Part shown: one piece after another, positions 84-46,281 of the stretch
Numbering within the stretch: the stretch's first letter is position 1
How the letters are laid out: each line of letters starts with the position of its first letter
Source of the DNA: Takakia lepidozioides
Taxonomy: Eukaryota; Plantae; Bryophyta
Assembly (NCBI GenBank): GCA_030704615.1
Contig: CM060733.1
Location: 15,810,001 to 15,874,000 of the forward strand
Reading direction: 5' to 3'
DNA length: 64,000 nt
Program-made: the position numbers and the translations under genes
The notes under the pieces: generated by a model
The model's input: only the letters and a program-made list of their open reading frames with translations
Database searches by the model: none
What the model was told of the DNA's origin: nothing

Positions 84-620
84 CTACTGGGAATCTTTTG
101 CATCTTCTCCCCCACTTTCCTCAGCTGAATCCAAGACAAATCTACGAGCCTGACGGGCTCTAATAGCTGCTGCCTCCTCCCTCATCTTCATTTTCTTGAG
201 GCTTGCCTCGTCTAAAATCTGTTGTACACGACTAGGTTCGGAACACCTCCTAATGGACACCGAAGCAAGCCGGGCAACATAAGTATGAAGGATGTAGTCC
301 CTTTCTGGACTAGGCATGAAATCCCCCCTGGCAAAAAAATGCACGTTCGTCCTGCCCATGAACTGCGGTGTAGACGTCCCTCCTACAGTACTTGGCATCC
401 TACAGTAAGAACAAATCCACTTGAAGAATGTCAATACCAGTAGAAGCGAAAACGGTCTTTCAATGAAATAAAAGAGCGAGGGGAGGTGCCTCACAAAATC
501 AGGAGGCAACTTACAATGCGACCACTCACTCGTAAACCATTTTCGGCACCATTTTCCTAGGTTGGGCCCGGAAATGGCTAAGTCCCAGAACTGACTGGGC
601 GCGGAACTAGAAAATGGCAC
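84..620 (-). pseudogene. Second gene of the MULE-like element (unknown function), prematurely stopped in this copy
   Basis: Near-identical to ORF 45305-46060 of copy 2 but stops after ...DSQ, where copy 2 continues into an acidic tail. Confidence 0.5.
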
Positions 621-1586: not shown

Positions 1587-2480
1587 TCATGCAGGTAATT
1601 CGAAGAGCGGATGGATGGAAATCCGGCGCCGGATTTCCATCCGCAGGTTAGTCGGTGCGCAAAATTTCCGCCATGCAGGTAATTCGAAGAGCGGATGGAT
1701 GGAAATCCGGCGCCGGATTTCCATCCTCCAGGTAAGTCGGCGCTGCAAATTTCTGTCATGCAGGTTACTTGTGAGCGGATGGAAGGAAATCCGGCGCATG
1801 ATTTCCATCCGCCAGGTACAAAACTTCCGTCATGCAGGTAATTCGGAGTGCGGATGGATGGAAATCCGGCGACGGATTTCCATCCTCCAGGTAAGTCGGC
1901 GCGCAAAATATCCGTCATGCAGGTAATTCGAAGAGCGGATGGATGGAAATCCGGCGCCGGATTTCCATCCGCCAGCTAAGTCGGCGCGCAAAATTTCCGT
2001 CATGCTCGAAGAGCGGATGGATGGAAATCTGGCGCCGGATTTCCATCCGCCAGGTAGGTCGGCGCGCAAAATTTCCATCATGCAGGTAATTCGGAGCGCG
2101 GATGGATGGCAATCCGGCGCCGGATTTCCATCCTCCAGGTAAGTCGGCACTGCAAATTTCCGTCATGCAGGTAATTCGAAGAGCGGATGGATGGAAATCC
2201 GGCGCCGAATTTCCATCCTGTAGATAACTCGGAGCGCCGAATTTCCGTCAGGCAGGTAATTCGAAGGGCGGATGGATGGAAATCCGGCGCCGAATTTCCA
2301 TCCTGCAGGTAACTCGGAGCGCCGAATTTCCGTCATGCAGGTAATTCGGAGAGCAGATGGATGGAAATCCGGTGCCGAATTTCCATCCTGCAAGTAATTT
2401 GGAGCCCGGATGGACGGAAATCCGGCGCCGAATTTCCATCCGCCAGGTAAGTCGAAACGCCGAATTACCATCCTGCAAGT
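1587..2480. repeat. Tandem array, ~85-bp unit, about 10 copies, each with the palindrome GATGGAAATCCGGCGCCGGATTTCCATC
   Basis: The unit start (consensus CATGCAGG) recurs at 1588, 1672, 1757, 1831, 1916, 2001, 2079, 2164, 2249 and 2334. Confidence 0.9.
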
Positions 2481-2589
2481 AATTCTGAGCGTGGCCGCTA
2501 GGTTTTTGGTCTAAAAAGACACTAAACCTTTAGTTTTTTGGCTGAAGTCCACTTTTAGACACGTTTTTCAGGGAATTCTCGACTGCTAG

Positions 2590-3720
2590 GGGGAAATCCG
2601 AACGGCCCCGGACGGAAATTCGGCGTCGTTTTTCCATCCTGGGAGGTTTTTATGTCGGCCTGTTTTCAGCCAGACCCCCTGACACGACTTCCTTTGGGGG
2701 GGCCCGGATGGAAATTCGGCGCCGAATTTCCATTCGGGGGATGCTTTCTGTCGGACAGGTGCCGGCCTCTCCGCCCGAAGCGACTTCATCCGGGCGTCCT
2801 TTGTTGGAAATTCGGTGCCGAATTTCCGTCCAGGGGTTGTAATTTGACGGCCAGGTGCCGCCCTCCCCCCCCGAGCCGACTGCATCCGAACAGCCCCGGA
2901 TGGAAATTCGGCGCCGTTTTTCCATCTGGGGAGGTTTTTATGTCGGCCACTTTTCGGCCTGAGCCCCCGACAAGACTTCCTTTGTGGGGGCCCGGATGGA
3001 AATTCGGCGCCGAATTTCCATCCGGGAGATGCTCTCTGTCGGACAGGTGTCGGCCTCTCCGCCCCAGGCGACTTCATCCGGGCGTCCCCTGTTGGATATT
3101 CGGTGCCGAATTTCCGTCCGGGGGTTGTAATTTGACGGCCAGGTGCCGACCTCTCCCCCAGAGCCGACTGCATCCGAACGGCCCCGGATGGAAATTCAGC
3201 GCTGTTTTTCCATTCGGGGAGGTTTTTATGTCGGCCAGTTTTCGGCCTAACCCCCCGACAGGACTTCCTTTGGGGGGGCCCGGACGGAAATTCGACGCCG
3301 AATTTCCATCCGGGGGATGCTCTCTGTCGGACAGGTGCCGGCCTCTCCGCCCGAGGCGACTTCATCCGGGCGTCCCCTGTTGGATATTCGGTGCCAATTT
3401 TCCGTCCGGGGGTTGTAATGTGACGGCCAGGTGCCGGCCTCTCCCCCGGGCCGACTGCATCCAAACGGCCCCGGATGAAAATTCGGTGCCGTTTTTCCAT
3501 CCGGGGAGGTTTTTATGTCGGCCAGTTTTCGGCCTGACCCCCCGACATGACTTCCTTTGGGGTCCCGGATGGAAATTCGGCTTTGAATTTCCATCCGGGG
3601 GATGTTCTCTGTCGGACAGGTGCCGGCCTCTCTGCCCCAGGCGACTTCATCCGTGCGGCCCCGGTTGGATATTCGGTGCCGAATTTCCATTCGGGGGGTA
3701 GTAATGTGACGGCACGGTGC
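2590..3720. repeat. Tandem array, 288-bp unit, about 4 copies, each with three GGAAATTCGGCGCCGAATTTCC-type palindromes
   Basis: AGGTTTTTATGTCGGCC recurs at 2644, 2932, 3220 and 3507. Confidence 0.9.
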
Positions 3721-3877
3721 CGGCTTCTCCCCTTCAGCCGACATCATCCGGACGGCCCCCCCCCTTTCTGACTGCATACCGTTGGCAAGTATTGCGCAAA
3801 GACCAGGGGCCACATTCCGGAGACAAGGTTCATTAACACTCTGACTGTGGGATTTTGAGATAGTTGGCTCCCTGGAT

Positions 3878-5739
3878 TTGGATCAGGCTTCGTCGTTCGG
3901 ACAAATCGGCACCGCATTCCTTCCCATTGCTGCATCCCCCTTCTACCAGGGAGCTTGCCCGCACGCCATCCTGGAGAGATCTTGTGGATTCCATTTTCTG
4001 CAGAGTCTTTCGCAGTACACAACCAGGCTCGTGGCGCCAGATTTCAGAGAGAAGCTCCGTTCCATGTGTCTTGCGTGGAAGCGCGCTCCCACCTTGGATG
4101 ATGCAGAGACACAGTTTGCATGTATACGGGCTTGGTGGACATCGTCAGGTGCTGTAAGGAAATCAGACGAGGGAGCAATGGTCAGTTGGCTAGCATGGTG
4201 GCATTATCGTTTCCTCCAGTTCGGCGACTATATGCGGGAGGTGAGTTGCACGAATTCGCGTCTCGTTGAATATTATTCTTGGCATTATTTGTAACTTGCT
4301 TGTAACCTCAACATGTGCTTGTGCAGAAAATGTGTCTCGACTCCGACACCGACATGCCCACGACAAACATGGCCGAATCAGTGCACTCTTCCTGGCGTGC
4401 CTCCTCTGCGGGCATCTGGTGGACATCCTCACTGCCACAACGGAGGACATTGTGAGGTCAACTATGCAGCAAAGCAGGTAACGAGTTCTTGAAAGGGAAA
4501 CAGTGGGGCTTGGGGCCGGACAGGCAGGAAATGCTGATGCGGACTACCTCCAAATCGAAGAATCCTTGGAAGTGGGCGGCAGCCTTGCGAGAGGGCCTTC
4601 AGGACACGCCATTGCTTCGAAGAGGCCAACATTTGGAAGGAGATGTTCATACCCGTCCAGTGAGACGAAGACTTGACGAGGCACCTGGCGGAGAAGAGGA
4701 TTCATGGCGAGCTGACAAGAATATTCGCACGCTCCCTCGTGGTCTTGTGATGTTGCCCGAGGAGGTCTCGTCGAGCACCGCAAGTCCTGCACGTTCAAGA
4801 TCGCCATCTCCTTTGAGCAGGGCGCGTGCCCGGCAACATAACGAGCCATCTGTAGTAAAGCAATACAACATTCCCATTGTGGAGACAAGAGTGTCGGAGT
4901 CACAGTGGAGAATTGCGAGGACATTGTCGGCATTTTGAGGGAAGTGCTGTGCCATCCGGGTGGATACGAGAGCACGCTGTGGTGAGATGATTCGGAGGAA
5001 CCCACACGGTGTTGTACCTGCACCTTGTTTCAGCGGCAGATTTTTGACTCTCACATTTGCTCACGCCACAACGTAGACATTTTGGTTCTGTAGGCACGAC
5101 ATAATGACCTGTGTATTTGGCAAGCCCAAGTACGAGATTCAGGGAATGCTGGAGCCTCCGGGCGTCTGGCCTGTTGCACCGGGTTGCAGCCTCTCTCAGA
5201 ATGAGGCGGATGCTCTATCTGCAGCAGGATTTCGAATGGTGCAACGCACAGACGTCCCGGCCCACGCATTTCCGGTTCCTCAGACCCAGCCATTGCAGAC
5301 TGCTCAGTCCAGTAGAGACGGATTAGACAATTCTGGACATCCCACAATGCGATTCGGAAGAGTGAAGAGACGACACCCTCCCAACAAGTTGAATGAGACT
5401 CGGATTGCCAATGCTCTTGGGATGGCTTGCACTATTCAGAGCTCCGTGGACATACCTCCACCCGGCCTTGGGCGTGTTTATCGGATGGCAACGGCCGGCT
5501 CTGCTGTACGCGACGATGTATACACAATTACGATTGGAGTGGAGCCGACTTGCAATTGTACGGACTTCTCGTTGATGGAAGCAAAGAAGGGTTCAAAGTA
5601 TTATCCGTGCAAGCATCTGTATTACATTTACCTGAAGAGGTTGAGGATGAACGTGACTATTGATGACTTTATTCATGCACCGGCCTTGAGCGTGAACGAG
5701 CTGCACAAACTCCTCCTTAGGGATTCCAGAAATCATTGA
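3878..5739 (+). pseudogene. Degraded MULE-type DDE transposase, C-terminal half, with SWIM zinc finger
   Basis: CxxH motif ERSCGFHFLQSL (3983-3994). An in-frame GT-AG intron at 4241-4326 leads to PTTNMAESVHSSW (third catalytic Glu region). SWIM CNCTD...CKH at 5551-5616. Stops and frameshifts are present. Confidence 0.75.
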
Positions 5740-6446
5740 TGGGGCAAAGGGAATCCTCCATATGGATATTTTCAATTGCATTTTCATGTATCAGACTTTT
5801 TTTTTGCAGTGTAATGAAATGCACCCCAAAACTCCTGGAATGAGGCAATATTCCATTCAAACTGAGATCCAACAGTAGTTGTGGGGCCATTTCTGGAAAA
5901 ATGGCGCCGAATTTCTCTATTTTGGGCCGAAAACTGGCTAAGTCCCAACATGCACTGGTACCCGTGTTTGGAAAAATGGCGCCGAATTTCCAGTTACATG
6001 GCCCAGAACTGCCCAACATCTGTGCAATCCCCGGCACCATGTACCGAAATTCGGCGCCACATTTCCAAATTTTGGGCTTACACACCTGTCATGAGGGGAC
6101 CTATAGCCGCGGAATTCGGCACCATTTTTCGCCAGAGAGACCTATTACCGCGAAATACATCGCGGTTTTTTCCGGTTACGGACCCTATTACCGCGAAATT
6201 CGGCGCCATTTTTGCACATATCGCTGGGAATTGGCATGAGCGTAAGACGAAATATGATGAGCACAACTCTCAAAACTACAATTTTCCCTTCAAGGTGCCG
6301 AATAATATATTTGTTTTTTCTGACACATTGCATTAAATTAATGTTTTATAATGTTTTTTATTTTCGAAATTTGTACTTCTGCTCATGAAAACCGATTGTC
6401 TTGCTACTCCGCTCATGCCGCTCATGCTCATGAAATAGCTAACCTC

Positions 6447-12841: not shown

Positions 12842-15800
12842 ATGAAAGGCGGGCCCATTAATGAATACGGAAAAAGGGAAACGGAACGAACGGCAAGTAC
12901 AGAAAAGCCGAATTCATGTCGCATGTGTGATCCTAGTGGACTATCCAACAGGGAAAGTCCACTAAAGAAGATAAAAGTTAAAATCCAGTCACAGCAGATA
13001 CAGCCAATAGAAAACCAGAGAAATGATCAAGAAAATGGAGGGAAATTGAGCGCAAGAGGCGGCGTCGTTCTGAGTAACGGGCGTCTCGACAGGACAGGCC
13101 ATAAATGCTATAACTTGGAAACTATGGAGGAACTAACAGACTATACGCTCGCAATATTACTTACGCAGTGGCATAGACACGACGGGACAGAGCAGAGCTT
13201 TTCTCTTGAACAATGCTTGCAAGCCCCGCATGCTTACAAGAAATTATCCATAGCTTTCTGCGGCAACCATACGTTTATGCTTTGTGCACTACAGGCATTC
13301 CTGCAGTTGTTACAGCCAAAGCAGTTCTGTGAGTCTAAAATGAAGAGAGTGAGAGGAATGGAGGAAATCAGGGTGAAGAGCACCACAATTCTGCAGAAAC
13401 AAACGATGGCTACCCCACAGGCGATAAAGATACTGGAGGAGCTGAGATTGGAAGGATTGCAAAGCCTGGATTGGACACTACACCATAGACAGTACATGTT
13501 ACAATTTTTGCAGAACTTTGAGCCAAGGACAGGAACAACAACGGTGAAGGGAGTTGAATTAATGATTACTCCCCTATACCTCCAGCAATTGTTTCGATTG
13601 CCAGCAGGTCAGGTGCATGTGGGGGAACACAGGGCAAGACTGCAAATAGGGGACTTATTCCAAGAAGGGAGTTTCTTTAAAACTCAGGGTTATGCTTGTA
13701 CCAAAGCTGTGTACCCAGGGTTAAAAGAGATAGGCCAGGTATTGAACGTTCTGTTTGCCCTGAAACAGAACCAACAATATTTGAGCAGATCCTTCACAGA
13801 GGAAATACTCAAAGGCCTGAAGGGACAAGAGGTACAATGGGCGGACATAATGTACAACGCACTAGTAGAGGAGATGAAAAGATTACAAGGTACTACCGCA
13901 AAGTCTCCTATCATAGTGTCTGGCCCAATCATTGCTCAAATAATCCTTAATTCTGGCATACTGAATGCACAAGAAAGGAAGGAAATGGGAGTGTTTGAGC
14001 CAGAAACAACTGCAATGGAAGAGCAAGGCTCTTCATACAGTGAGGGTGGACTAGCAGCACAACCCGAGACTAAGAGGCAGAGAAGGGGAAAGACTGTAGT
14101 GGCGGATCCACTGGCTTCACGGATTCCGCATGATAATGTTTCCCAAGCTCATGGCCAGGAAGGGGCACAGCAGCACAGACAAATGCTATTACTGGAAGCA
14201 GGACCTTCAGAGAGGGAGCAGGAAGTTACTTCTGCATCACAGCCAACACAGCCACTTGAACGACTTGTCACAAGGTCACAAGTTATCCATGCAGCTCAAC
14301 CCGAAATAATTGATTTGGAAAGTGAAGGGATAGATATTCCAACTACAGAACAAATAGTGGCAGAAATAGAGAAAGGGGACATTCTCTATGAATGTTCTGG
14401 TCTGGTCAAGGAGACAGAAATTCCAGAGGTGCAACAGTTGCCCAAGGGAAATCCTGAGGTGCATATAATACACACACATGTGTCGGAGGTACCACAGGCG
14501 GAAGGTCATGGCACTGTAGCACCGGTGATAGATGAAGTAGTTCAGGAAGAAAATCCGGTGGGACAATGGCCTGAATGGTTAGTGAGACATCATACTGTTG
14601 AAGATCAGGAGGAACAGCAGCAACCTCACCATGATGACCCTCAACAGGCAATGCTGATGAGTTCCATAGGCAGGACACTTAATTTGTTGGGGACTTATGT
14701 CAAATCCCATGTTCCAATTACCCAATTGACAGCCTTGAAAGAGGAACTCAGGAAGGAGTTTGAGGCTCGACTTGCCACTGAGTGTGCAAACAAGGTCGAT
14801 GAAGAGGTCACTCTCAAGATGAAGCAGGACTTGGGCAATACAGAAATAGCTTTGCAGTTGGCCAAGCAACAATTGATTGAGGCAGGCCGCACAAGACCAG
14901 TTGCACGAAGCACATAAGCAACAGCTATACCAAATGCAGGTGCAGCATGAAAGCAAGTTGCAAGAACTGAATGCACTACATACGGAGTTGCAGACAGTGC
15001 ATAACAGGATGACGATACAATGTGCTACATTTACAACTATGCTTGACCAATCAACAAAAAAAATAAACAGTCAAGCGGAAAAATGTACGAAGGCAGAGGA
15101 AGAGAATGTTGAGCAAATGAAGCTCATTGTCGATATGAAGAATACAATCTGTCGCAATAAAAATACTTTCAAGCAATACAGGCAGATGGAAGCTGATCAA
15201 GAGAAACACATCGTGGAGTTGCAACAAATCATCGTGGCCAATAGAAATGAAATCGCGGTCAGTAACAAGGCTTCGAAGGAAGCCAATAATCTACTTGCTG
15301 CCTATGCGCAATTGGTTGAGCCACAGGCGAAGCGCATGGAGGCTTTACAACAGCAGTTGGAATTGTACAAGCTAAGAGAGGAGCAAACTCTCAGGGGAAC
15401 CACAAGCAGCTTGGTGGATAATAGCCTTATGCAGGTCTGGTTAGCACAAGGGCCAGTAGAGGGCAAAAGCCCACGGAAGCTCACCCAAAGCGAGATGAAT
15501 GAGCTCAGGCTGCAGGTGCAGAACATTGCCACAACTACTATAGACAATGTCTATAGTAGGATAGCAGAGTTACAAGAGGATGTAGACGGACTCCAGACTC
15601 AAGTAGAAGACCTCACTTCAAACATCGACCAAAGAGTCTATATCCCTCAGGACCAGCTAATGGCTTCTTATTTACAAGCCAGAACTTTGGCTTTTCAGTC
15701 TTCACAGGAGGTGCAGGAGATGCCAATGATACAGGAGCCAGTACCACCACCACCACAACAGGTCAGTGTACCAGTAGCTGAACCTGTGGTTACTACAACC

Positions 15801-16876
15801 ACACCACAGCCACCACAGTCGAAGGTATGGGGCAATGCCGCTTTTAACCCACCTAAAACTCCAGCTGCAAGGGAGTACAGCAGGGCTATGCTTATGCCCT
15901 TCAACCAAATTCCCATCATGTTGGATTTGGCTTGGAAAGAATTTAGTCCTCCGCAGTCATTCGCACATTACTACCAAATCATGCGTATTTGGCTGCCAGT
16001 GGCAACTAGGACTAAAGTTCTTCCAAACAATCGACATATTGAAGATCATCACTTTGCACAATACTGGCACGAGGCAGGTACCATGTTGAGGGAATTGGTT
16101 GCTTTCCAGGTTGTACATGGACTCATTTATACCAAGACCAAGGAGATAGCAAGTATTGTCATGGGGTGCGGGCTATACTACGCTGCTTGTTTTCTGGTAC
16201 GTTACCACATTGAGCAACAAAAGATGCAAACATGCTTTCAAAGTTACTCCAGTGGAGATCATTGGGTATTACCTTCGGTGCCACCTCATATGTACCTATA
16301 TGACCCAAAAGTTATGATGCAGAAGGAATTCGTTCATGGTTTCAAGCAGCCTGCAACCATTTGTCAACACAGAAATTCGGACTTGATGACATTTTCTATA
16401 AGGGACATGTGGCATGGAAGTACTTGCACGCTGCACCAGTAATTGGTACCCCACTCATCTGGACAGACAAGGAGCTCAGTGCCTACACCAATTTTGCTGT
16501 TCAGCGGTTACACCAAGTTGTAAAATACAAACTTCCAGACATGGTAGGACAGCATTGTATGCCCCAGATGATTCCACAAAAAGTTCGAAAATTAAAACAC
16601 CTGAGAGGCGATGAGGATTCTGATACAACTGTTTCTTCACAGAATTCTTTTGACATGGGAGAAGACTATGCAATTCAGATGGAAGAGAAGAAACAAAGGG
16701 GATCTCCTATGCCGGAAAGATTACCTCTGCCTCCAGAAGGCCTCACTTATCCAGGTAGTGATCAACCATCTCCATCAACCAGAGACAGACCTCGGGCTCG
16801 TACACACAGTCCACCACGAAACTCTCAACGTCAACAAGGTGCTCACTCACAAAGGTTTGCTACTCGAAAACAGTAA
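12842..16876 (+). pseudogene. Retrotransposon extra ORF (plant mobile domain/Transposase_32-like region, long coiled coil, conserved C-terminal domain) with two frameshifts
   Basis: ORFs 12842-14917, 14877-16442 and 16361-16876. Homologous pieces at 57718-58584 and 48448-49439 read through both frameshift points. The true start is uncertain (about 13340-13406). Confidence 0.75.
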
Positions 16877-20772: not shown

Positions 20773-21506
20773 ATGTCAACATCGGAAATAGACGACACAA
20801 TAGACACTGTAACGGACCAACAAATCCAAGAAATAACCCACCAAGACATGACAAACGTGATATACGACAGTTTCACGTCCAATGACCATCATGCCCTAAA
20901 GGTGGGAACACATGGAAGCGTCTGCCCTATAGTATATACTTCCACAGAGCCTTGTGGAACGTCCCTTCAGACCGTGAAGAAATAACAATCTTCATAGGTA
21001 TTGCAAAGTTCCCGTACCTTGGCAAAACCGGGAATTACAGATTCGTGACTTTTGCCGAAGAACTAAAAGACGCAAAATTCACAATATTGATAGAAGACAG
21101 TCATTTCATGTTCGACTACGCAAATACAATAACAGAATGGTTCGATAATTGGAGGAGGAGAGGCGAGGACATGAGGTGGATGGGTGGAAACAACATGAGC
21201 TTCACGAAAAAGCTCCTAAAAAATAACGCAAACAACTCTGGCTCGACGTCTGGTAACAACAAACGTCAAAAAACAAACAACGACGAGATGTACAATACAA
21301 TAGAAGTCCTTAACAAAAATGGCCAAAAAATGGATGGAGAATCAGTACGTTCAGCGGATCTCGTTGCAGTCAAGTGTAATATCCGATATTGGATGAATTT
21401 CCATCACAAGAAACACGGGCTTTCATTCCAATTAAAAAGGGTCAAACTGTTGGCCAAAGCATAAAAGGAGACAGAGTCGAACGACAACAAAAGCATAGCT
21501 TGGTAG
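20773..21506 (+). pseudogene. Disrupted gene resembling T7 gp2.5-type OB-fold ssDNA-binding protein
   Basis: ORFs 20773-20985 and 20952-21464 join by one frameshift. The C-terminal VLNKNGQKMDGESV...VAVKCNIRYW...GLSFQLKRVKLL pattern matches gp2.5-like SSBs by eye. Read-through of the TAA gives the tail KETESNDNKSIAW. Confidence 0.5.
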
Positions 21507-22275
21507 AGCTTAAATTAGACACATCTAAACGTTCCATGTAAGGGCCATCATATTTTATAAAGACCGTCCTCCTTGATCTCCTCTTCAAAAAGTCTACATT
21601 TTGTCCCAATGCATGCTCACAACGGATAATAAAAAAATAGTGATTTATCATAGTCCAAATCTACTTGTTGTACCAAAACGACCCATGGAAAACCCCTCCA
21701 ACTCCCCTCCCCTCCCAATCGGAACTGCGTGACCGATATTTTGGCACGCTGCATTATCCGTACTCTCTCTCATGATCCTTGAGTATGGCCCATCCGTCCG
21801 GACGTCCTTCTCAGAAGTCGTCGCTAGTAGTGCGGAGCAACGCGCGAACCCCTGGTATGATACTAGCACATGCTTAATATGATACTGTCATTCAACAACC
21901 AAGTTGTAGACAACCAAGTTGTAATGGGCACGTACCACCGTGGAATTTGTGGGTTCAATCCACCCTTGGTCTCACAAAGTGTCCACCTTTCTAGGTGAAG
22001 GCAGTAACCCTTGGGGGGTGAAGAGACACCATAATTTATGCTTCCTTCTAGAGGCGTCAAATATTAAATATTATAAATATTGTTATTGGTACTGTCAGTC
22101 TTTTCCTCACAGAAAACTGCATAGCACTTTATCACATAACACCCCAAACATCGCTCAATGGTTAGTAGATCCACGAAGGAACTTAGTGGCTGTGATTCGG
22201 TTGATCTATTCAGTAAACTTGGGATTATGGAAGGAGCCACAAGCAAGGAAATGGCTGCAGTCAAGGCCCTCTTCG

Positions 22276-22935
22276 CTACATGCATCTCTTTGCAATTGTT
22301 AAGAGCAGCCCCTTTTTTAGACATGGGAAGAAGGTGTCGACGGTGACTTCCTCATTGGGGTCTACAAGTGACCATTGTACGCGTCTAACCAGTTGATCCA
22401 GATACACCAACATCTCCGACCGCGCCAACTCATAGCCAAGGCAGCTGTGTATACCTCCTCCAAATGGTATAAACATGTACGGAGGAGGTCCCATACCTTC
22501 GAATCGGGAGGGGTCAAAGTTGCGTGGTTCAGGAAAGTACTCTGGGTCCATGTTGGAGCGATGTGCTGAAGACAACACCTGCGACATAGTGACACAACAT
22601 ACCTATGATTAAGAAGCAGACCGTGCGAGTTACTGTGATATCCGACAATGCTGATTGATTTGGAAGAGTTAGTGACCACTTGAACTGATAAGGTTAAGTG
22701 GTTTTGATCGATGAAGCCCATGAGAAAAAAGTGCTTGGACCGTTGGAGCCCAATATTGAATAGGGACAATGTGAGAATTAGATGCTAGTGGGTGGATCTG
22801 AGCACCTTCCACCCCTTGGGAATTGTAAAGCCATCGAATTCAAAATCGGTAATAACCTCCCGAAAGAGGATTGGCACCACTGGTACTCTGCGCATACTTT
22901 CTTGGATAACGCACCATGTATACTTCATCTGCCTC
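22276..22935 (-). pseudogene. Cytochrome P450, CYP85 clan (CYP716/718-like); only the last two exons were found
   Basis: MKYTW..QESMR (ExxR) and IPKGWK, then phase-0 intron 22579-22805, then FDPSRF and the heme motif FGGGIHSCLG with a normal stop. No upstream exons were recognised. Confidence 0.85.
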
Positions 22936-24035
22936 GTTTTGTGGGCTTTCGAAGCTTTGCTTCCGTGGGCTCGACATGACAAGAGGGAGAGGGAAACATG
23001 GGAGATTTTGTGAGAAACCAGCTACGGCGAGATACTATCGCTCCTCACTGAGACGATCTCAGAGAGCCAAAATGGGCTCTTTTGCTCGCCGAGCTGATCT
23101 TCCTACTTGTTTTTCACGGGGTGCAAGCTTTCGGGCTTTTGGGACACCTTCTCTTTGGAATATGCTCAACTTGGGGCATGCATATGAGGTAAGGTGCTTC
23201 TCTGAGAGCCTCTGATGTTCCATCTCGTTCATAGAAAAGATGGAAATCAACAGAATCGACAACCACAAAGTTTTGTGGTGGTTTCTATTGGACAGCCCAT
23301 CTCTTGAACCCATTTGTAATTCACAACAACACAACGGGCTTCAAATGACATGTCTACCCGACAATAATTCGCATAAGTCGAGTAGCAGTCGAATCAGCAG
23401 TGAAAAGTGACCTTTTCTAGACATACTGCGATGTATAAAAGTGTCGAACTCGTGTTGAGGAAGGGTTGAGGACCAGCAACGTCACTAAACTTAAGGCACC
23501 TACAAGGTTGATATTATGAATGGCTTGCAGATACAAATAGGACAGTTGGTAATTTCTTGTTGTATGTACGCGGATAGAATTGGATGTCCAGTCTAGTTTG
23601 GTTTATAAGCCACTTGGGAAAGCAGACATAACATTCGTATTATTGCTATGGCTATAGTTATGTTCCGGTCCCCCTGTGCTGTAATAAGCATATAGGCCTG
23701 CATAATTTGATTTCTTAGAAGTAAAGAATGTGGAGTAGTTCAAGAAGACTATTCAAAAGAGCTGCTGTCACAGGAACGCTTTAAGTTCCCAGTTCATTAA
23801 GTTCAGTTGATTTGATTACATGTTTTTGTGTTGTTGGAAGTGGGTGCGAGCACTCAATTGCACAGTCCAGACGCGAAGATGGTGACACATCGTGCACGAT
23901 GACTACTCTTGTATGTTTGTTTCCTTTTTGTGCCCCTCTCTCGTGCTGTAGCTACTGACGTCGAGGTAAGTTGAATGAGTACATTTGGCTAAATGGAGGT
24001 TGATGACTGCACACTGCACACTCCAGCTTCAAGTC

Positions 24036-24116
24036 GGTATTGGGGACCAGCCTCTCATAAGAGCTCGTATGAGAGGCTGGTCCCCAATACCTCTCATACG
24101 AGCCTCTCATACGAGC
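24036..24116. repeat. 56-bp palindrome followed by two 13-bp direct repeats of its arm
   Basis: GGTATTGGGGACCAGCCTCTCATA-AGAGCTCG-TATGAGAGGCTGGTCCCCAATACC, then CTCTCATACGAGC twice. Confidence 0.9.
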
Positions 24117-24565
24117 TGACCATGTTGACAAGGTGTCTTTGAAAATTGTGACATTTTAACAAATGCATGGTGTAGCCCTGCCCTTCAATCATCTCACAGT
24201 AAGGTTCCTATTCCAAATAAGGGTCCTATCAATCCATCTAGAAACAATCATCCAGCAACATTGGTCCCTTAAAAGCTGGTCCGTAACAAACAAGTAGGGA
24301 GAAACCATTGCGTATTCTCTGCATGTCAAATGATTCACGTATGAAAATTATACTAAGTACTCCAATCCCAATACTACCTATGAATATACTAATCCAAACC
24401 CAATACTACAATTACGTATTATTTACGTACGAAAATACTACTCCAAACCCAATATTACTTGCAGTCCCACACTTCCAAGAATTCAAACCCAGTGTCGTGG
24501 GGAAAGAACGGCAAAGTCGTATTTGGGAACTCAAGTTCTATCCGAAGAGAATGAAGTCGAGGAGT

Positions 24566-26158
24566 CTACCGTTCATGCCTCTGTGCATGTCCATTGCATG
24601 CAGTCTTAACACCCAAGTTAGGGTTGTGATATCCACTGCGGAGCGCAGCCAGGGCAAAAGCAGTTGTCGTGATCTCGTTCCCGAACCAGCTTTTGGGGTC
24701 GTTGTAGGAATAGAAGGGACAAACATCCCATGACCCATCCACGTTTTGCAACCGTGCCAGCTGCTTCCGATCGCTGGTGTTCCTGATGCCGCACAACTCG
24801 CAAGCTAACAGTCTCATTGCTAGGGCAAGAGCGCTCCCTGGCATTCCAACATGCTCGCTCACCCGCTGCCCCAGTAGTTCCAGAAAGCCTGCCTTTTGAA
24901 AGTGCTCCTTGAACTTGTGGGCAAGGCGAGCAAGTTGACACAAAAAGGTCTCTGGCAGGGGATAGTATATACTCCCCCGCAAATATGCTCTGCTCTCGAG
25001 CAAGTTGTACAGAAACTGTTCGGTCTTCTTCACAGGTGCGGGTCGGCCTGCTAGGTGAAATAGATAGCAGGTGTTGACCTGACTGACCAAATCTATCCTT
25101 GGACGCAAGGGGTCGAAGTACACCTGGAAAATGCCGTCCTCGGTCCTCATTTCTAGCATCTTGTCCAATACGGCGTTGATTTGTTTCATGTCCACTTTCG
25201 AGAACTTGTACAAGGCAATTAGCGCCACTGCGGTTGTGTCGAGATCATCTGGGTAAGCTTTGTGGGTGGCCGCGTGGGTATTTACATCTCTTTGGACCAC
25301 CCTTTCCTCTGGAGGGAAAAAGTTAAATGTCCCGGTTGCTGGAGCTGTATGCATGGGAAGGAAGTCTGGGTCCTCTAGCAGTTCCGCCATCACAAAGTGG
25401 TCGAAGTGGACTGGGACTCGAAGGCCGTCGGACGTAAGAGAGGGACATCTATCAACTGATCCTCTCCTCCGCAACAAATAATTAGCAGCGGTTAACAGCC
25501 TCTCTTCATCAGTGCGAAGATGGTACAATACGAGGTTGACCGTCACCTTGACGTCTTCCGATCCGACAAGAACACCAGTGAAGCCCAAGGACTCAGCAGC
25601 AACCACATTCTGTAGTGTGTCGTCAATGAAAATGGTTTCCGTTGCTTTGCAACCCGTCTCGCGCAAAACGTGCTGGAAATAACCGAAGTTGGGTTTGCGA
25701 ATCCCAACGGCAGCGGAATAGAACACTCTATCAAACTTCTGGAAAAGATCTGGGAATCTCGCGAGGAGGTAGTCGTAGTCTTCTCTAGCAGCATTAGTCA
25801 TGCAGAAGAGTTTGAGCTTGCCCGAAGAACCTAGAGCATCTACCAGTTGGAGAATTGCAGTAACAGGACGGAGAGAGCCTCTCGCTCTGTCGACGAATGT
25901 TTGAACATCTTCTGCATTGAAACCGTTGTCGAGGGACACCCTGTGCAAGGTTTCCGCCCAGGACAGCTTGCCCTCAATATATTGGAACCAAACATGGCTG
26001 CGCAGTATACGCTTGAATCGAACGGGGTGCAGCGGCGTGCCATGACTGTCGTCTAAGTTGGGCATCAGCAGAACTCCGCCGATGTCGAAGCAGACACTTT
26101 TGAATGGACCGTTGCTGCAGCTGAGAAATGGGAAAAGCTCGGTATTCAGACTGCCCAT
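24566..26158 (-). CDS. Intronless bifunctional HAD-like phosphatase / class II terpene cyclase (drimane-type sesquiterpene synthase family), 530 aa
   Basis: N-terminal HAD motifs FDIGGV, TN, RKP and IDDTLQNV. C-terminal YPDDLDTT (25232-25249), FDPLRPRID, YYP.PE and the QW motif QNVDGSW (24728-24748). The ORF is uninterrupted. Confidence 0.88.
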   Translation of the reverse strand: MGSLNTELFPFLSCSNGPFKSVCFDIGGVLLMPNLDDSHGTPLHPVRFKRILRSHVWFQYIEGKLSWAETLHRVSLDNGFNAEDVQTFVDRARGSLRPVTAILQLVDALGSSGKLKLFCMTNAAREDYDYLLARFPDLFQKFDRVFYSAAVGIRKPNFGYFQHVLRETGCKATETIFIDDTLQNVVAAESLGFTGVLVGSEDVKVTVNLVLYHLRTDEERLLTAANYLLRRRGSVDRCPSLTSDGLRVPVHFDHFVMAELLEDPDFLPMHTAPATGTFNFFPPEERVVQRDVNTHAATHKAYPDDLDTTAVALIALYKFSKVDMKQINAVLDKMLEMRTEDGIFQVYFDPLRPRIDLVSQVNTCYLFHLAGRPAPVKKTEQFLYNLLESRAYLRGSIYYPLPETFLCQLARLAHKFKEHFQKAGFLELLGQRVSEHVGMPGSALALAMRLLACELCGIRNTSDRKQLARLQNVDGSWDVCPFYSYNDPKSWFGNEITTTAFALAALRSGYHNPNLGVKTACNGHAQRHER

Positions 26159-26414
26159 GCTTCAAGGAGGCCACGGCCGTGCGATCGAGGGGGTCCGACC
26201 TCCTGCTGAGTTGATCTTCAACTAGTGTACCATGACTGTCGTCTAAGTTGGGCACCAGCAGAACTCCGCCGATGTCGAAGCAGACACTTTTGAATGGACC
26301 GTTGCTGCAGCTGAGAAATAGGAAAAGCTCGGTATTCAGACTGCCCATGCCCATTCAAGGAGGCCACGGCCGTGCGATCGAGGGTCCGACCTCCTGCTGA
26401 GTTGATCTTCAACT
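26041..26414. repeat. 190-bp tandem duplication of the leader and first ~40 codons of the terpene cyclase gene
   Basis: 26041-26224 and 26231-26414 are nearly identical. Confidence 0.92.
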
Positions 26415-26420
26415 ACCTAG

Positions 26421-26428
26421 TTTATATA
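26421..26428 (-). promoter_or_regulatory. Candidate TATA box of the terpene cyclase gene
   Basis: TATATAAA on the minus strand, about 70 bp upstream of the first ATG (26354). Confidence 0.5.
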
Positions 26429-27031
26429 AGGTTCGAAGCAGGGCGGTTACCCGGTTGAGCGGCCGGGTCCGGTTCTAGGGAACGGGTAGTGCAGTGTGCA
26501 TCAACCCCTTGGTGGGCCCCTTGCTTCGTCGTGGCAATACCCTGCTTTGTCAGACTGTGGCACATAATACTCTAGGAACATGGCCTGCATCATTTGGGTG
26601 AAGATTTATTTGTGCCGAGTTGCACGCGTATGGAGCAGCATTCTTTACAGTGTAATCGGTCACAAGATCCACATGCCTACTCTTAATCCTAAACTACTAC
26701 CTGGGGGGTAGTTTCACTTTTACCAAACATTGACCCCTGTGTAGAAAAATGGTCTTAGATAATCTATGATATATTAAAATATCCACATTGGCATCGTGGG
26801 TTGGTGTTATCAACTATTTTTAGCAATATCCCAACACTAGGTGTGCAGGGACCTTTAATGAGGTGGTGGGCCACCCCAAAACATTCTACAGCAAATCAAA
26901 TGATTGAGTATTTCAAGTTTTATAGCGCACGCGGCAGCACTGACACACTCTATGTATCAGGATTCAGGAGTTGCTCCCAGCAAACTCTCGAGTCTTTGGG
27001 GACACCTTTAAAGCGATAATCATCGCTAGGC

Positions 27032-31442: not shown

Positions 31443-34400
31443 CTAATCGACTTGAACATCATCATCCAGAGCTTCTTCGTCCTCATCAAGCTGCAAGTCT
31501 TCTTGCTCATCAGAGTCATTGTCATAAATGGCCTGGTCACCAAAAGGCACATCTGAATCATCTTCCAACTTAGTTTCAATGACCATGTCTTCATCTTCTT
31601 CTCCAACATCCGCATCTGATGGAGCCTCACATGACCAGTCTCTTCCTCCTCCGCATTTGCCTCGCCCCATGTAGATCCCGACCATGATAGATACGTCTTC
31701 CTCTTGGTTGAGCATGCACAACCACCTTCCAATTTTCTGATCCAGAGAAGAAAACTTGCTCCATGTCTGAAGGCCATGAAAAAGGCTCATCGGAGGGACG
31801 ATGAGTAGACTCGAGCCTATTTGTATTGACGCGCATGAAACCACACTCGTCTTCCACTATTGTTGCGGATGGCCGCACAAGATGTGGCTGGAACCACCTT
31901 GCCTTGAAGATAAGAAGCTGGTGCCTTGTATACTGAAGTTGGAGTATGCTCTCAAGCTCTCCAAAGTAGTTGAGTGTGCTCATGGTAGGTCGTGTATCTC
32001 CCCTGCCCCACCCGGAGTCTTGCCAATATGAGGCACACAAGCCAGAATCAAACGTTGTTTTGCGCTTCATGTCAAGAGCACGAATGCGGAAATAACGACC
32101 ATGAACCCAAACCGCTGTGTATGAGGTCGTAAATTGAGAGGGGCCCCTTGCAATGTCTTCCACCAAATCTGAAACCACTCACCTTTCGCAATGCTATCCT
32201 CTACTTCAGTCCGAAGCCAATGGCGGAATGAACTTAGAGGCTGCAATTCCATGGGCAATTCTTGTGAAGGCACATTCCTACGCCGGCCCCTTGCTCGCGG
32301 AGCGCGTGTAGTCGCCCTTGCATGGTTCTGCCTCCACGCAACCGTCTCCTCCTGTCGTTGCTGAACAAGGTTATTGTATCTTGCCTCCCACTCATGTATG
32401 GATGGGGTGTTCTTCAGTATGAACTCATGCACTTGGTAAATCACCATGATGGGTAGTTTTACCCTCTTTGAATTTTTGGGGCAAAACGATATCATTGGTT
32501 CGTACATCCTCGTCTTCCTTCTACATCGGAGGGGCTTCCTTATCCACCCTTGCCAAGTACTCCATGCGGTAGAACATAGCCTCTTGCAATGTATACCCCT
32601 CCGTCATGCTACCCTCCGGGTGTGCCATTTGTCTTACATGTGCTTTCAAAGTCTTCATGTATCGCTCAAGGTAGTACATCCACCGAGAATGAACGGGGCC
32701 GGCAATCGAAGCCTCTTCCACTAAGTGCACTACCAAGTGCACTTGGATGTCAAAGAAGGAGGGAGGAAGGTGCATCTCCAACATACACATGACCACCGCC
32801 GCCTCCTTCTTCATGCGTGGAAAGTCCGTTTCCTCCAGCTCTTTGGAGCAAATCCACCGGAACAATGCTCCCAATCTATAGACTGTCTCGCGAACCTCGG
32901 GAGTCAATGTCCCATGTACTGCAATGGACAAGATGTCTTGCAATAGATTGTGGTAGTCATGAGACTTCAAACCATGGACCCCGTCTTCGTTGAACTTCAT
33001 ACGGAGGGATGACCCATAACCAGTTGGTGTTCGGACAGCTCCTATGGTGGCTATCACTTTCTTGTATTCCTCTTTTGTCCATTGCCAAGGTGCACGCCTA
33101 TACTTCCACCGTACAACACCCTTTGGGTCCACACCATTTTTCTTCGGTCCATAGATGGGGCATGTGACCCTGCTCCTCAAGTTCCTTTCTAACACCAAGA
33201 GAATCTCCTTTTGCAGCCACTCCCTTCTTTGCCGGCGTGCCATGAAGAACACGAAAAAAGGACAAGCAAACATTCTTCTCAATATGCATGGGATCTAGAA
33301 GATGACGAATCTTCAGGTCCTACACATATCCCCACCCACAAATTCTTACACGTCTATTTTGTCGTGAAAGTGACAATGGAAATCATACAAAACATGCAAT
33401 ATCACATGCATGCATAACAATATTGATGGTGTTTTTGTGGAATATGTACCGCCCAATATGACAACTTGTAGAAGATTGAAAGCCGTTTCATGCCGGGCAC
33501 CTCCACTTCACTGGACCCCTCCGGATGGGCCTCCTTCCATCGGTCTTCCCAAAAGTGCCTGGATGGTGTCACAGGTGGGGGACATAACTCCACTTTGCCA
33601 TCAAACAAGTGTTTGTCTCTTCTTCTCCAATGATGGCTCAAAGGAAGAAACTTGCGGTAGTGGGGATACATCATCTTGTGAAGATTGCTGGAGCTTTGTG
33701 CATCAAGTTCATTCCCACAATGCAGGCATGCGTGGTACCCTTTAGTGCTCAACCCCGAGCTAACAGTAAGTCCTGTAGACATTCCGCCACATTAGGAAAG
33801 ACAAAAAGTTTCTATGTGCATCTACCCCACTACGTTGCAGAATACTGTCGCCGCTACTTCAATCAATCCCAATCCTCATCAATATCCCTTGATAGGTAAA
33901 TGTACGCGGGTTTCTCATGGGGAACATAATATACCTGGATAATCATGCATTGTCCAAAGCAAGATGTCTTTCATCTGAAAAGATTGTCCGGCCATAGGGT
34001 CAAGTGAAGCATCCAATGCCGGGACCCCCCTCCATAGCTCCTTCAATTCATCAACTAGAGGTCGCAAGTACGTGTCCATGTCTTTCACTTGTTTTTTCCC
34101 TATGAGACATTCACACCATTAATTGTTTCAATGCTCCACCATGCTAATTATACTTCATAATGAATGACACATCTTACTACATGATTACGTCACTCATCAA
34201 TCTTTCATCGGAATTGCGCCAAAGAGAAGAAGATTAATGTAAAATCCAAAGTAATAATAAGCATGAAATGAGAACACTCACCCAGTACAATGGCAGCCAA
34301 CATGATATGGCATTTTTTTTTATTGAAAGATACAGAGGGATATTGTAATTCACCATGGTCACCGGCCAAGTGGAATGACTACATGACTGGACAGAGAATG

Positions 34401-42356: not shown

Positions 42357-45300
42357 GAGGTTACCTATTTCACGAGCATGAGCGGCATGAGCGGCATGAG
42401 CGGAGTAACAAGACAATCGGTTTTCATGAGCAGAAGTACAGATTTCGAAAATAAAAAACATTATAAAACATTAATTTAATGCAATGTGTAAAAAAAAACA
42501 AATATATTATTCGACACCTTGAAGGGAAAATTGTAGTTTTGAGAGTTGTGCTCATGATATTTCGTCTTCCGCTCATGCCAATTCCCAGCGACATGTGCAA
42601 AAATGGCGCCGAATTTCGAGGTAATAGGGTCCGTAACCGGAAAAATCCGCGACGTATTTCGCGGTAATAGGTCTCTCTGGCGAAAAATGGTGCCGAATTC
42701 CGCGGCTATCGGTCCCCTCATGACAGATGTGTAAGCCCAAAATTTGGAAATGTGGCGTCGAATTTTGGTACATGGTGTGCCGGGGATTGCACAGATGTTG
42801 GGCAGTTCTGGGTCATGTAACTGGAAATTCGGCGCCATTTTTCCAGACACATCCAGACCAGTGCATGTTGGGACTCAGCTAGTTTTCGGCCCAAAATAGA
42901 GAAATTCGGCGCCATTTTTCCAGAAATGGCCCCACAACTGCTTCTGTTGGATCTCAGTTTGAATGGAATATTGCCTCATTCCAGGAGTTTTGGGGTGCAT
43001 TTCATTACACTGCAAAAAAAAGTCTGATACATGAAAATGCAATTGAAAATATCCATATGGAGGATTCCCTTTGCCCCATCAATGATTTCTGGAATCCCTA
43101 AGGAGGAGTTTGTGCAGCTCGTTCACGCTCAACGCATCGGCTGTTGGCCTCTTCGAAGCAATGGCGTGTCCCGAAGGCCCTCTCGCAAGGCCGCCCGAGG
43201 AGGGAACTCAAAGAAGATATTACCGTCGACGTCTGCGGGAAGGCATGTAACCGATTTAATTGCGAACTTGCTGTAGTCCAGCCCGGCCAGCTCCGAGCGG
43301 TGTCCCTCCATGTGAAGCCCTCGCAGAATTTCAAGAATGGATCGAACTGCGGTGCTCGTGCTGGGAATATGACTCCCTCGTCCACTGACGTCCATTGAGG
43401 ACTTGCCTGATCTCCAGGACGATCTCGGAACTTCCATGACCTCGTCTGAGTCGGACAGGTTGTGAACAACCCGGTTCTTGCTCGTCTTCATTGATGGGTT
43501 TGGCTCTGGATTTACTTCGTTGCGGACTTCTCTCTTTGAGGTACCCACACTCTGATTCGCGGATTGTTTCGTGGAAGGCGCCAGGATAGAAGGTGCATTT
43601 GGCGGGCATATGAAGTCCCCAACAGCCCTGTATATGACGCTATCCGATGGTGGAACTCGTCATTCCCTGCCATCGCCGAAATCATCGTGGAGGTCAACAA
43701 TACTCTCGACAACAACGCCGTTTGAGTCCTTCTTTTCCTCCTCCAAAAAAACCGACCCCGGTTTCAGGTGGTATCGAACGCACAGATATTTCTCCATCAC
43801 ACGGCATATGTCCCTCTGCACGGAAATGAAGCTCTATGCTCGTGAGGAGGGCAGTACACTGTAGCGCTCGGGTTTCCGCCATGGGAGATGTGCACACAAG
43901 ACAGCCAGGATGGCGTGCGGGCAAGCTCCCTGGTAGAAGGGGGATGCAGCGATGGGAAGGAATGCGGTGCCTATTTGTCCATGCGACAAAGCCTGATCCA
44001 AATCCAGGGAGCCAACTATCTCAAAAATCCACAATCAGAGTGTTAATGAACCTTGTCTCCGGAATGCGGCCCCTAGTCTTTGCGCAATAACTGCCAACGG
44101 TATGCAGTCAGAAAGTGGGGGGCCGTCCGGATGATGTCGGCTGAAGGGGAGAAGCCGGCACCGGGCCGTCACATTACTACCCCCGGATGGAAATTCGGCA
44201 CCGAATATCCAACAGGGGCCGCCGGTTGAAGTCGCCTCGGGCAGAGAGGTCGGCACCTGTCCGACAGAGAACATCCCCCGGATGGAAATTCAGAGCCGAA
44301 TTTCCATCCGGGCCCCCCAAAGGAAGTCCTGTCGGGGGGTCAGGCCGAAAACTGGCCGACATAAAAACCTCCCCGGATGGAAAAACGGCACCGAATTTTC
44401 ATCCGGGGCCGTTCGGATGTAGTCGGCCCGGGGGGAGAGGCCGGCACCTGGCCGTCACATTACAACCCCCGGACGGAAAATTGGCACCGAATATCCAACA
44501 GGGGACGCCCGGATGAAGTCACCTCGGGCGGAGAGGCCGGCACCTGTCCGACAGAGAGCATCCCCCAGATGGAAATTCGGCGCCGAATTTCCGTCCGGTC
44601 CCCCCCAAAGGAAGTCTTGTCGGGGGGTCAGGCCGAAAACTGGCCGACATAAAAACCTCCCCGAATGGAAAAAACAGCGCCGAATTTCCATCCGGGGCCG
44701 TTCGGATGCAGTCGGCTCGGGGGGAGAGGTCGGCACCTGGCCGTCACATTACAACCCTCGGACGGAAAATTTGGCACCAAATATCCAACAGGGGACGCCG
44801 GATGAAGTCGCTCGGGCGGAGAGACCGGCACCTGTCCGACAGAGAGCATCTCCCGGATGGAAATTCGGCGCCGAATTTCCATCTGGGCCCCCACAAAAGA
44901 AGTCTTGTCGGGGGGTCAGGCCGAAAAATGGCCGACATAAAAACCTCCCCGGATGGAAAAACGGCGCCGAATTTCCATCCGGGGCTGTTCGGATGCAGTC
45001 GGCTCGGGGGGAGAGGGCGGCACCTGGCCGTCAAATTACAACCCCCGGACGGAAATTCGGCACCGAATTTCCAACAGAGGACGCCCGGATGAAGTCGCTT
45101 CGGGCGGAGAGGCCGGCACCTGTCCGACAAAGAGCATCCCCCGAATGGAAATTCGGCGCCGAATTTCCATTTTTCCAGTTCGGGGCCGAAAATGGCTAAG
45201 TCCCTGATCTGACTGGCACCAAAATCGGAAATTCGGCGCCATTTTTCCAGTTCCGGGCCCAGTCAGATCTGGGACTTAGCCATTTTCGGCCCCGAAATGG

Positions 45301-46281
45301 AAAAATGGCGCCATTTTTCCAGTTCAAGGCCCCGAAAATGGCTAAGTCCCTAGGGTGGCTGGAACCGCAACCGGAAATTCGGCGCCATTTTTCTAGTTCC
45401 GCGCCCAGTCAGTTCTGGGACTTAGCCATTTTCGGGCCCAACCTAGGAAAATGGTGCAGAAAATGGTTTACGAGTGAGTGGTCGCATTGTAAGTTGCCTC
45501 CTGATTTTGTGAGGCACCTCCCCTCGCTCTTTCATTTCATTGAAAGACCGTTTCTGCTTCTGCTGGTATTGACATTCTTCAAGTGGATTTGTTCTTACTG
45601 TAGGATGCCAAGTACTGTAGGAGGGGCGTCTACACCGCAGTTAATGGGCAGGACGAACGTGCATTTTTTTGCCAGGGGGGATTTCATGCCTAGTCCAGAA
45701 AGGGACGACATCCTTCCTACTTATGTTGCCCGGCTTGCTTCGGTGTCCATTAGGAGGTGTTCCGAACCTAGTCGTGTACAACAGATTTTAGACGAGGCAA
45801 GCCTCAAGAAAATGAAGATGAGGGAGGAGGCAGCAGCTATTAGAGCCCGTCAGGCTCGTAGATTTGTCTTGGATTCAGCCGAGGAAAGTGGGGGAGAAGA
45901 TGCAGAAGATTCCCAGGAGGTGAGGTGGACAGTCCCCCAAGAGGACGGGATTTTTGAGAGGCATAGTGGAACTGGTGCATCACAGAGCTCGGAGGATGAG
46001 GGGGATGAGGGGGATGAGGAAGAAGGTGGGGCAAGTTCCTCGGAGGGTGTAGGAGAGTAGTGCCCATTCCGGCTATGACAGTTAGAACACACTTGTATAG
46101 ACGTGGCTTGCCACAAAATTTGCAATAAAATGTTGCATTTCAAGTCCACTGGTGCCACATTCCAACTTCACATGACCCTATTTTCGTGCCTCCTAACCCT
46201 ATTTCCGTGGACACACAATGGTCTGCTCATGCTTTTTTTTTTTCCGCTCATGCTCATGCCGCTCATGAAATAGCAGCCCCC
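42357..46281 (-). mobile_element. MULE-like element, copy 2 (3925 bp, both termini present)
   Basis: Imperfect TIRs GAGGTTACCTATTTCA / TGAAATAGCAGCCCCC. Target duplication GACTTGAA at 42349-42356 and 46282-46289 (9 bp if the next G is counted). It carries the 288-bp and short palindrome arrays. Confidence 0.88.
45452..46060 (+). CDS. Putative accessory gene of the MULE-like element (acidic C-terminus), divergent from the transposase
   Basis: Open frame to 46060. A candidate GTGAGT...CTGTAG intron at 45474-45603 joins MVQKMVYE in frame to MPSTVGG...; the same signals are present in copy 1. Confidence 0.45.
   Translation, partial: WCRKWFTSEWSHCKLPPDFVRHLPSLFHFIERPFLLLLVLTFFKWICSYCRMPSTVGGASTPQLMGRTNVHFFARGDFMPSPERDDILPTYVARLASVSIRRCSEPSRVQQILDEASLKKMKMREEAAAIRARQARRFVLDSAEESGGEDAEDSQEVRWTVPQEDGIFERHSGTGASQSSEDEGDEGDEEEGGASSSEGVGE

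Follow-up and report, generated by a model that had tools for sequence, protein, structure and literature searches.

The locus described here lies in a 64,000-nucleotide stretch of the Takakia lepidozioides genome (GenBank assembly GCA_030704615.1, contig CM060733.1, positions 15,810,001 to 15,874,000), which we call the window and whose coordinates are used throughout. Its minus strand carries an intact, intronless gene for a HAD-like class II terpene cyclase, followed 1632 nt beyond the cyclase stop codon, on the same strand, by the last exons of a cytochrome P450 gene. The parts of the cyclase gene are as follows.

24566 to 26158, minus strand: open reading frame (ORF) of the HAD-class II terpene cyclase, 530 codons, intact and intronless
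25559 to 26101, minus strand: HAD phosphatase domain (about residues 20-200), with motif I D25-I-G27, motif II T121/N122, motif III K155 and motif IV D179-D180
24635 to 25450, minus strand: class II cyclase beta domain (about residues 237-508), in which Y347, R352, R354, N362, Y398 and Y399 are kept
25232 to 25246, minus strand: DxDTT motif, D305-L-D307-T308-T309, with DDLDTT at residues 304-309
24233 to 24565, minus strand: equivalent of the 3' untranslated region (UTR); homology to paralogue RNA and DNA contigs ends at 24233

The ORF begins with the ATG at 26158, preceded 6 nt upstream by an in-frame TGA, and encodes a single polypeptide in which a HAD Rossmann domain is followed by an alpha6-alpha6 class II beta domain. 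We tested it for membership of the HAD-like class II terpene cyclases (HAD-TC-beta; Pfam PF00702/PF13419 plus PF28380). Pfam places the HAD domain at residues 20-192, NCBIfam returns generic HAD-IA matches only, and PF28380 (AstC-like_C) is found in the precomputed annotation of all close kin. Searches of the PDB with phmmer recovered AstC (22tz) over residues 17-508 in one full-length alignment (E 2.2e-59) and the drimenol synthase AsDMS over residues 19-506 (9mhs, E 6.8e-51; 9m7d, E 3.1e-50). An AlphaFold2 model built from a 45-sequence alignment reached a pLDDT of 91.5 and a pTM of 0.90. The ten best PDB matches to this model are all AsDMS chains (about 520 columns, E 1e-29 to 1e-32), and the next are HAD phosphatases (YihX and the N-domain of soluble epoxide hydrolase) and the beta domains of squalene-hopene cyclases. 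The whole-chain TM-score of the model is low, about 0.5, which may be explained by the inter-domain orientation, as this varies even among the solved HAD-like cyclases (AstC paper, PMC13244436). The absence of introns is reflected in the colinearity of the protein with the solved enzymes and with three loci of the liverwort Riccia sorocarpa. Besides, a 1978-nt RNA-like contig from a paralogue spans 24233-26199 without a splice joint, albeit with small indels. This and all further RNA-like contigs come from two small sequencing runs of other samples (X5 and X6), whose RNA nature is only guessed and which were seen as contigs, a form that drops rare variants. ORF, Pfam and PDB alignments thus agree with the first-pass annotation of this DNA, which had read an intact, intronless 530-aa ORF with HAD and DDLDTT cyclase domains. 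Its assignment to an AstC/DrtB-type architecture is likewise supported by the placement in the AsDMS-type HAD-TC-beta family.

We mapped catalytic residues through the PDB alignments, a MAFFT alignment of 18 members and the roles given in PMC12232559, PMC12365925 and PMC13244436. D307, the sole invariant column among 45 aligned family sequences, aligns with the general acid of AsDMS (D323, or D333 in the numbering of PMC12365925) and of AstC (D273). The residues that activate this acid, N362 and Y399, align with N324 and Y361 of AstC, and Y399 also with Y427 of AsDMS. Y347, R352, R354 and Y398, which anchor the diphosphate without metal, are conserved. HAD motifs I to IV are intact, as in the bifunctional subgroup, and their AsDMS counterparts (D33-L-G35, S128/N129, K161 and D185-D186) are the same in kind. 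All residues found essential by mutagenesis of AsDMS (D43, G45, N139, K171, D195, D196, Y373, R378, Y426, D331, D333 and Y427) are identical in the window protein. More broadly, it keeps 33 of the 34 columns that are at least 85% conserved among 67 members, while characterised-type members deviate at 0 to 5 of the same columns. The sole deviation, R436H, falls at a position to which none of the three papers assigns a role. Judged by these residues, the window cyclase looks fully competent and is predicted to be bifunctional.

All characterised relatives take farnesyl diphosphate (FPP) and yield drimane skeletons, and the window cyclase would be expected to convert FPP to a drimane diphosphate or alcohol. 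In the reaction we propose, D307, activated by N362 and Y399, would protonate FPP at its terminal double bond, and the beta domain would shape the chain into a bicyclic diphosphate of the drimane type, with Y347, R352, R354 and Y398 holding it. The HAD domain would then strip the phosphates, with D25 as nucleophile, with D25, the carbonyl of G27 and D180 as Mg2+ ligands, and with the participation of T121, N122 and K155. The end product would be drimenol, albicanol, drim-8-en-11-ol or a similar drimane alcohol. Release of the alcohol, as by DrtB, AsDMS and AacA, is predicted because all four HAD motifs are kept, unlike in the phosphatase-dead AstC. The positions linked to selectivity in AstC and AacA, H447 and Y448, correspond to S484 and Y485 of the window protein. 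A product prediction from the AstC/AacA residues was dropped, since AsDMS, itself a drimenol synthase, has Ala at the Y448 position, at which the drimenol and drim-8-ene enzymes carry Tyr.

Among the solved enzymes, AsDMS from Aquimarina spongiae (PDB 9MHS, 9MLO, 9M7D-F; PMC12232559, PMC12365925, PMC9128629) is the best structural match, yet it is only about 26-27% identical to the window protein. The two have the same domain order (HAD, then TC-beta), nearly the same length (526 aa in AsDMS, 530 aa here), the DDLDTT sequence and the unusual DXG form of HAD motif I. They differ at AsDMS R415, which is Ile397 in the window protein; mutation of this arginine (R425A in another numbering) raised AsDMS activity, and by analogy Ile397 is probably harmless. 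Their hosts, a bacterium and a plant, differ too, the proteins fall in separate clades, and the partners in the bacterial cluster are an FPP synthase and an AraC regulator, not P450s. AstC, the drim-8-ene-11-yl diphosphate synthase of Aspergillus oryzae (PDB 22TZ, PMC13244436), is the best PDB match by sequence. It has in common with the window cyclase the D271xD273T acid/base pair and the N324/Y361 activators, and its K314 is R352 in the window. In AstC, however, the HAD nucleophile is lost (E-L-K at motif I) and there is no phosphatase activity, whereas the window protein retains all four motifs.

The closest named proteins are encoded by three genes of Riccia sorocarpa (49-51% identity) that lie on chromosomes of 32-52 Mb, and metagenome and Logan fragments reach 63-71%. 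Genes of the ferns Adiantum nelumboides and Ceratopteris richardii show 41-42% identity in the cyclase domain, and fungal and bacterial members are 25-33% identical to the window protein. Searches with the whole protein and with a 7-sequence plant profile gave the same 10 matches, probably because common HAD words crowded the word-indexed candidate list; a query limited to residues 235-510 brought in Ceratopteris and further fungi. We placed 45 sequences in an unrooted IQ-TREE phylogeny (LG+C20+F+G4, posterior mean site frequencies), in which the group labels rest on the named members only. A plant-like group (ultrafast bootstrap/SH-aLRT 100/99), a bacterial group (100/98; named members Aquimarina and Streptomyces) and a fungal group (100/100) are each split off by a single branch in all 200 bootstrap trees. 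Within the plant group, a bryophyte subclade (100/99) is sister to a fern subclade (100/100), as in the plant phylogeny. One further sequence, P0014 (511 aa, from contig L005 of SRR33208275), is full-length with HAD and DxDTT intact and branches below the split of bryophytes and ferns; it could stand for a further plant lineage or for a group resembling a donor. Like P0011 and P0015, it was taken from a Logan contig of about 2 kb from an SRA run.

That the gene is intronless and its architecture otherwise described from bacteria and fungi only might point to a gene that was recently transferred horizontally out of a fungus or bacterium, or to microbial contamination of the assembly. We consider this extremely improbable. 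Fungal or bacterial identity is 26-33% at best, and in the tree the gene falls among plants only, in a clade that divides into liverwort and fern branches, with kin on chromosome-scale plant assemblies. Moreover, plant retrotransposons surround it, a spliced plant P450 fragment lies beside it and several paralogues occur in the same DNA sample. The plant flanks, the plant clade and these paralogues lead us to reject contamination, which the first-pass annotation had named as an outcome that would undo its proposal. Its view of a horizontally acquired cyclase does not hold for a recent event, given the plant clade (100/99), while an ancient transfer is neither shown nor excluded. Because the plant sequences form their own deep clade, any transfer would be ancient, and the tree is open to both an ancient acquisition and an ancient inheritance with losses. 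With three clades and no root, a donor cannot be named; midpoint rooting joined the plants with bacteria in a quick tree and with fungi in the careful one, and we drew no conclusion from it.

The three Riccia loci (L001:10043-11551, L002:10046-11509 and L003:10055-11545) are colinear with the window protein over about 500 residues and contain no intron. The deposited Riccia models are 447-560 aa long, two of them (P0008 and P0009) are without a conserved C-terminal block, and they are probably mis-modelled intronless genes. HAD motifs separate the two plant subclades. The bryophyte members (the window protein, P0001 and P0002) retain all four, whereas the fern kin, like AstC, do not: in P0011, P0015 and P0016, motif I reads E/D-P-x-G and motif IV D-C, D-S or D-A, and the lysine of motif III is lost in P0015. 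Judging from these motifs, the fern enzymes may have lost phosphatase activity, like AstC.

Downstream of the cyclase, the P450 gene and the DNA that separates it from the cyclase comprise the following.

22803 to 22934, minus strand: penultimate P450 exon, 44 codons, with the K-helix ExxR as ESMR; the first exon surviving
22576 to 22802, minus strand: P450 intron, 227 nt, GT..AG
22276 to 22575, minus strand: last P450 exon, 99 codons plus stop, with PERF and the FGGGIHSCLG haem motif (Pfam p450, E 4e-18, profile positions 362-448 of 462)
23496 to 24268, no strand assigned: multi-copy repeat between the cyclase and the P450 remnant, recognised by summed contig depth, with loose ends at 24266/24268

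The splice joint 22575-22803 is seen in both RNA-like runs and not in the DNA runs. The spliced contigs are only 92-95% identical to the window and therefore come from a paralogue. One such paralogue mRNA contig is 2425 nt long, and the 924 nt that lie 5' of the 22934 boundary match nothing in 22935-26500. Inspection of all stop-to-stop frames in 22900-24300, of which no Pfam scan was made, revealed no P450-like frame. The unmatched 924 nt and the missing frame together identify the window P450 as a dead, 143-codon 3' stump with no upstream exons in the window. Its last exon alone best matches CYP120, taxadiene 5-alpha-hydroxylase (CYP725A) and CYP90B1 in the PDB, and its nearest Atlas cluster is 'beta-amyrin 28-oxidase-like', at a score close to the maximum. 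This agrees with a CYP85-clan, CYP716-like enzyme, as a lead from that exon only.

The first-pass annotation had thus correctly located the last two exons of a P450 about 1.6 kb downstream on the same strand, recognised the gene as 5'-truncated and proposed, as the matches of the last exon also suggest, a CYP716-like identity. Its proposal of a cyclase-P450 biosynthetic cluster at this locus is not upheld, given the P450 stump, the compromised cyclase start described below and the finding that, in the two RNA-like runs, no RNA-like contig was at least 99% identical to the window copy beyond a 40-nt piece. A plant gene cluster comprises at least two adjacent, intact, co-expressed, non-homologous pathway genes, and the window locus does not. 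As the P450 is a dead stump, no cyclase-P450 pathway can run from here. Nor did the linkage recur in relatives, where the first-pass annotation had suggested looking for it: annotation and tblastn placed no P450 within 10 kb of the three Riccia loci or the Adiantum gene, which makes the linkage specific to this lineage.

The window copy is one of several. The DNA runs, from the probable source sample, contain, over both genes, exact contigs and several paralogue contigs of 90-99% identity, some of which have frame-breaking indels near the cyclase C-terminus. The RNA-like contigs that cover the cyclase are 92% (1978 nt, 24233-26199) and 96.5% identical (633 nt from X6, 25584-26211). Paralogue homology breaks off at 24233, 22934 and 22212, the last being the end of the P450 homology. 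These breakpoints, the P450 stump and a duplication at the 5' end of the cyclase bear out the first-pass suggestion of a decayed or partial copy. We therefore regard it as likely that the locus arose by partial segmental duplication of a bryophyte cluster that is specific to this lineage and built around the HAD-like class II cyclase. We infer a fuller cluster as the source of the copy, along with its gene order and the direction of the duplication. Two features of the intervening DNA may be recorded here. A near-perfect palindrome of 28+28 nt without a spacer lies at 24036-24091, inside the multi-copy repeat, and a 55-nt piece at 23134-23188, with unrelated flanks, matches the middle of RNA-like contigs of 468 and 372 nt in X5 and X6. 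Being of exon size, the latter may be left over from some other transcribed gene or repeat.

At the other end of the cyclase, the 5' region carries a tandem duplication that the first-pass annotation had missed, and is arranged as follows.

26421 to 26430, minus strand: TATA-like element (cttatataaa), present only upstream of the first repeat copy; putative in function
26227 to 26415, minus strand: upstream copy of a 190-bp tandem duplication, comprising the 5' UTR and the first ~42 codons, with ATGs at 26354 and 26348
26037 to 26224, minus strand: downstream copy of the duplication, carrying the true start codon at 26158
25974 to 26354, minus strand: upstream out-of-frame ORF of 126 codons, made by the duplication and overlapping the true start by 185 nt

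The two copies are 98-100% identical with a period of 190-193, and the duplication is recent. Paralogue transcripts stop near the first base of the repeat unit, which suggests that the unit begins near the normal transcription start. A transcript from the TATA-like promoter would meet the AUGs at 26354 and 26348 first, and the real start could be reached by leaky scanning only. Given two upstream AUGs and a 126-codon out-of-frame ORF, the cyclase is probably poorly translated at this locus.

One might instead suppose that the cyclase is expressed normally and works on its own as a drimane alcohol synthase, and that the P450 remnant and the duplicated 5' end are either irrelevant or tolerated, through leaky scanning or a start site in the second copy. 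Several observations suit this idea: the ORF is intact, with every catalytic residue and all but one of the 34 family-conserved positions kept, the real start codon stands in a favourable context, with A at -3 and G at +4, the X6 contig is 96.5% identical over 25584-26211, and cyclase genes stand alone, without P450 neighbours, in Riccia and ferns. We nonetheless consider it unlikely, though the strongest of the alternatives. The only TATA-like element precedes the first repeat copy. Two AUGs lie upstream, the 126-codon frame that they open rules out reinitiation, as its stop lies 185 nt beyond the cyclase's own AUG, and the near-exact RNA-like match is confined to the 40-nt piece mentioned above.

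Some points nevertheless weigh against our reading of the locus. The cyclase ORF is without any decay and may be a working stand-alone gene. The evidence on expression is weak, coming from two small RNA-like runs seen as contigs only, and the 633-nt X6 contig could be a duplication-free allele of the window locus itself. The 190-bp duplication was read from the window sequence and could not be confirmed by independent junction-spanning reads. Finally, product identity cannot be read from sequence, so that the exact drimane isomer is not predictable.

The first-pass annotation had described the surroundings as transposon-rich, and indeed the window otherwise consists of transposon DNA, with fragments of Ty3 reverse transcriptase, RNase H and gag and an ORF with a DUF4218 domain (transposase-associated, CACTA-type; 32521-33282, minus strand, E 1.5e-32). 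The locus is bracketed by inverted blocks at 1-6427 and 42385-46002, which are 96-97% identical and about 36 kb apart; the left block runs off the window. In both, tandem arrays abound, built on repeat units of 96, 85 and about 145 bp (at 2580-3700, 1575-2476 and 545-1453, mirrored at 44214-45464). Given the inverted blocks and the transposon setting, a transposon-mediated origin of the copy is possible but unproven. In its explicit form, in which a CACTA-, Pack- or Helitron-type element captured both the cyclase and the piece of P450 in place of a plain segmental duplication, we consider it improbable, more so than a stand-alone synthase. Such capture would fit the bracketing blocks, the DUF4218 ORF, the multi-copy repeat that abuts the cyclase 3' end and the mere gene fragment left of the P450, as is typical of captured genes. 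However, no element termini or target-site duplications were found around 22212-26430, the inverted blocks run off the window and may be two copies of another element, and the cyclase came with its own promoter region and a complete ORF. A weak 22-nt inverted pair at 23098/24281 was considered as transposon ends and rejected, as it misfits the paralogue breakpoints.

Elsewhere in the window, the plus-strand region 12842-16442 holds ORFs of 691 and 521 aa without a Pfam match and belongs to a repeated element with inverted partial copies at 48448-49358 and 57718-58584 (79-87% identity between copies). A 170-aa ORF at 20952-21464 is likewise without a Pfam match.

A related arrangement is described from a fungus. 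The drt cluster of Aspergillus calidoustus (PMC8596746) combines the HAD-like cyclase DrtB with the P450 DrtD, the acyl-transferring hydrolase DrtE and others to make drimane esters. At the window locus, in contrast, the cyclase alone is whole, and the P450, on the evidence of its last exon, looks to be of the CYP85-clan/CYP716-like type; the plant P450 would then have been recruited independently of the fungal drt enzymes. The seed-plant drimenol synthases VoTPS3 and PhDS use the same substrate, and a drimane alcohol is expected from the window cyclase as from them. Yet they are canonical class I enzymes, with an alpha domain, DDxxD and ionisation of the diphosphate, unrelated to the window cyclase in fold and chemistry. 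We know of no description of a drimane-forming enzyme from a non-seed plant, and our searches turned up none. Papers up to 2026 assign the plant drimenol route to class I enzymes and HAD-beta cyclases to bacteria and fungi (PMC13244436; 10.1101/2025.09.20.677545; PMC12365925). Our search of the full-text literature up to 2026, with subscription journals outside its coverage, retrieved no paper on plant HAD-like cyclases. The statement of the first-pass annotation that related enzymes are reported from ferns therefore finds no counterpart in the literature searched, and the fern homologues exist as database entries only.

Liverworts and certain ferns have drimanes as classic defence compounds. 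Drimenol has been recorded in the liverworts Bazzania, Diplophyllum, Frullania and Targionia (PMC11397239). We give roughly even chances to a broader proposal, namely that HAD-like class II cyclase-phosphatases form an old clade, passed down vertically and common to liverworts and ferns, and that these enzymes, instead of class I synthases, make the drimanes (drimenol, albicanol and polygodial types) long known from such plants. In the bryophyte studied here, on the same proposal, the family would have grown in number and drawn a CYP716-like P450 into a cluster now being copied and degraded around the genome. Liverwort-type members, with a predicted live phosphatase site, contrast with fern members predicted to be without one.

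In summary, the locus holds a real and probably competent plant HAD-like cyclase, and neither a working cluster nor a demonstrable recent transfer. What the locus supplies is an intact, intronless ORF that is easily cloned, together with evidence of a multi-copy family and of a P450 linkage that is young and unstable, since Riccia and Adiantum lack it and it has decayed at this locus. The family in plants is of high interest, and the window copy of moderate interest, as an ORF to assay and as evidence of cluster turnover. If true, a plant clade of HAD-beta enzymes would alter the view that the HAD-beta drimane route is confined to bacteria and fungi, and would add one more "microbial-type" terpene enzyme family to those of bryophytes.

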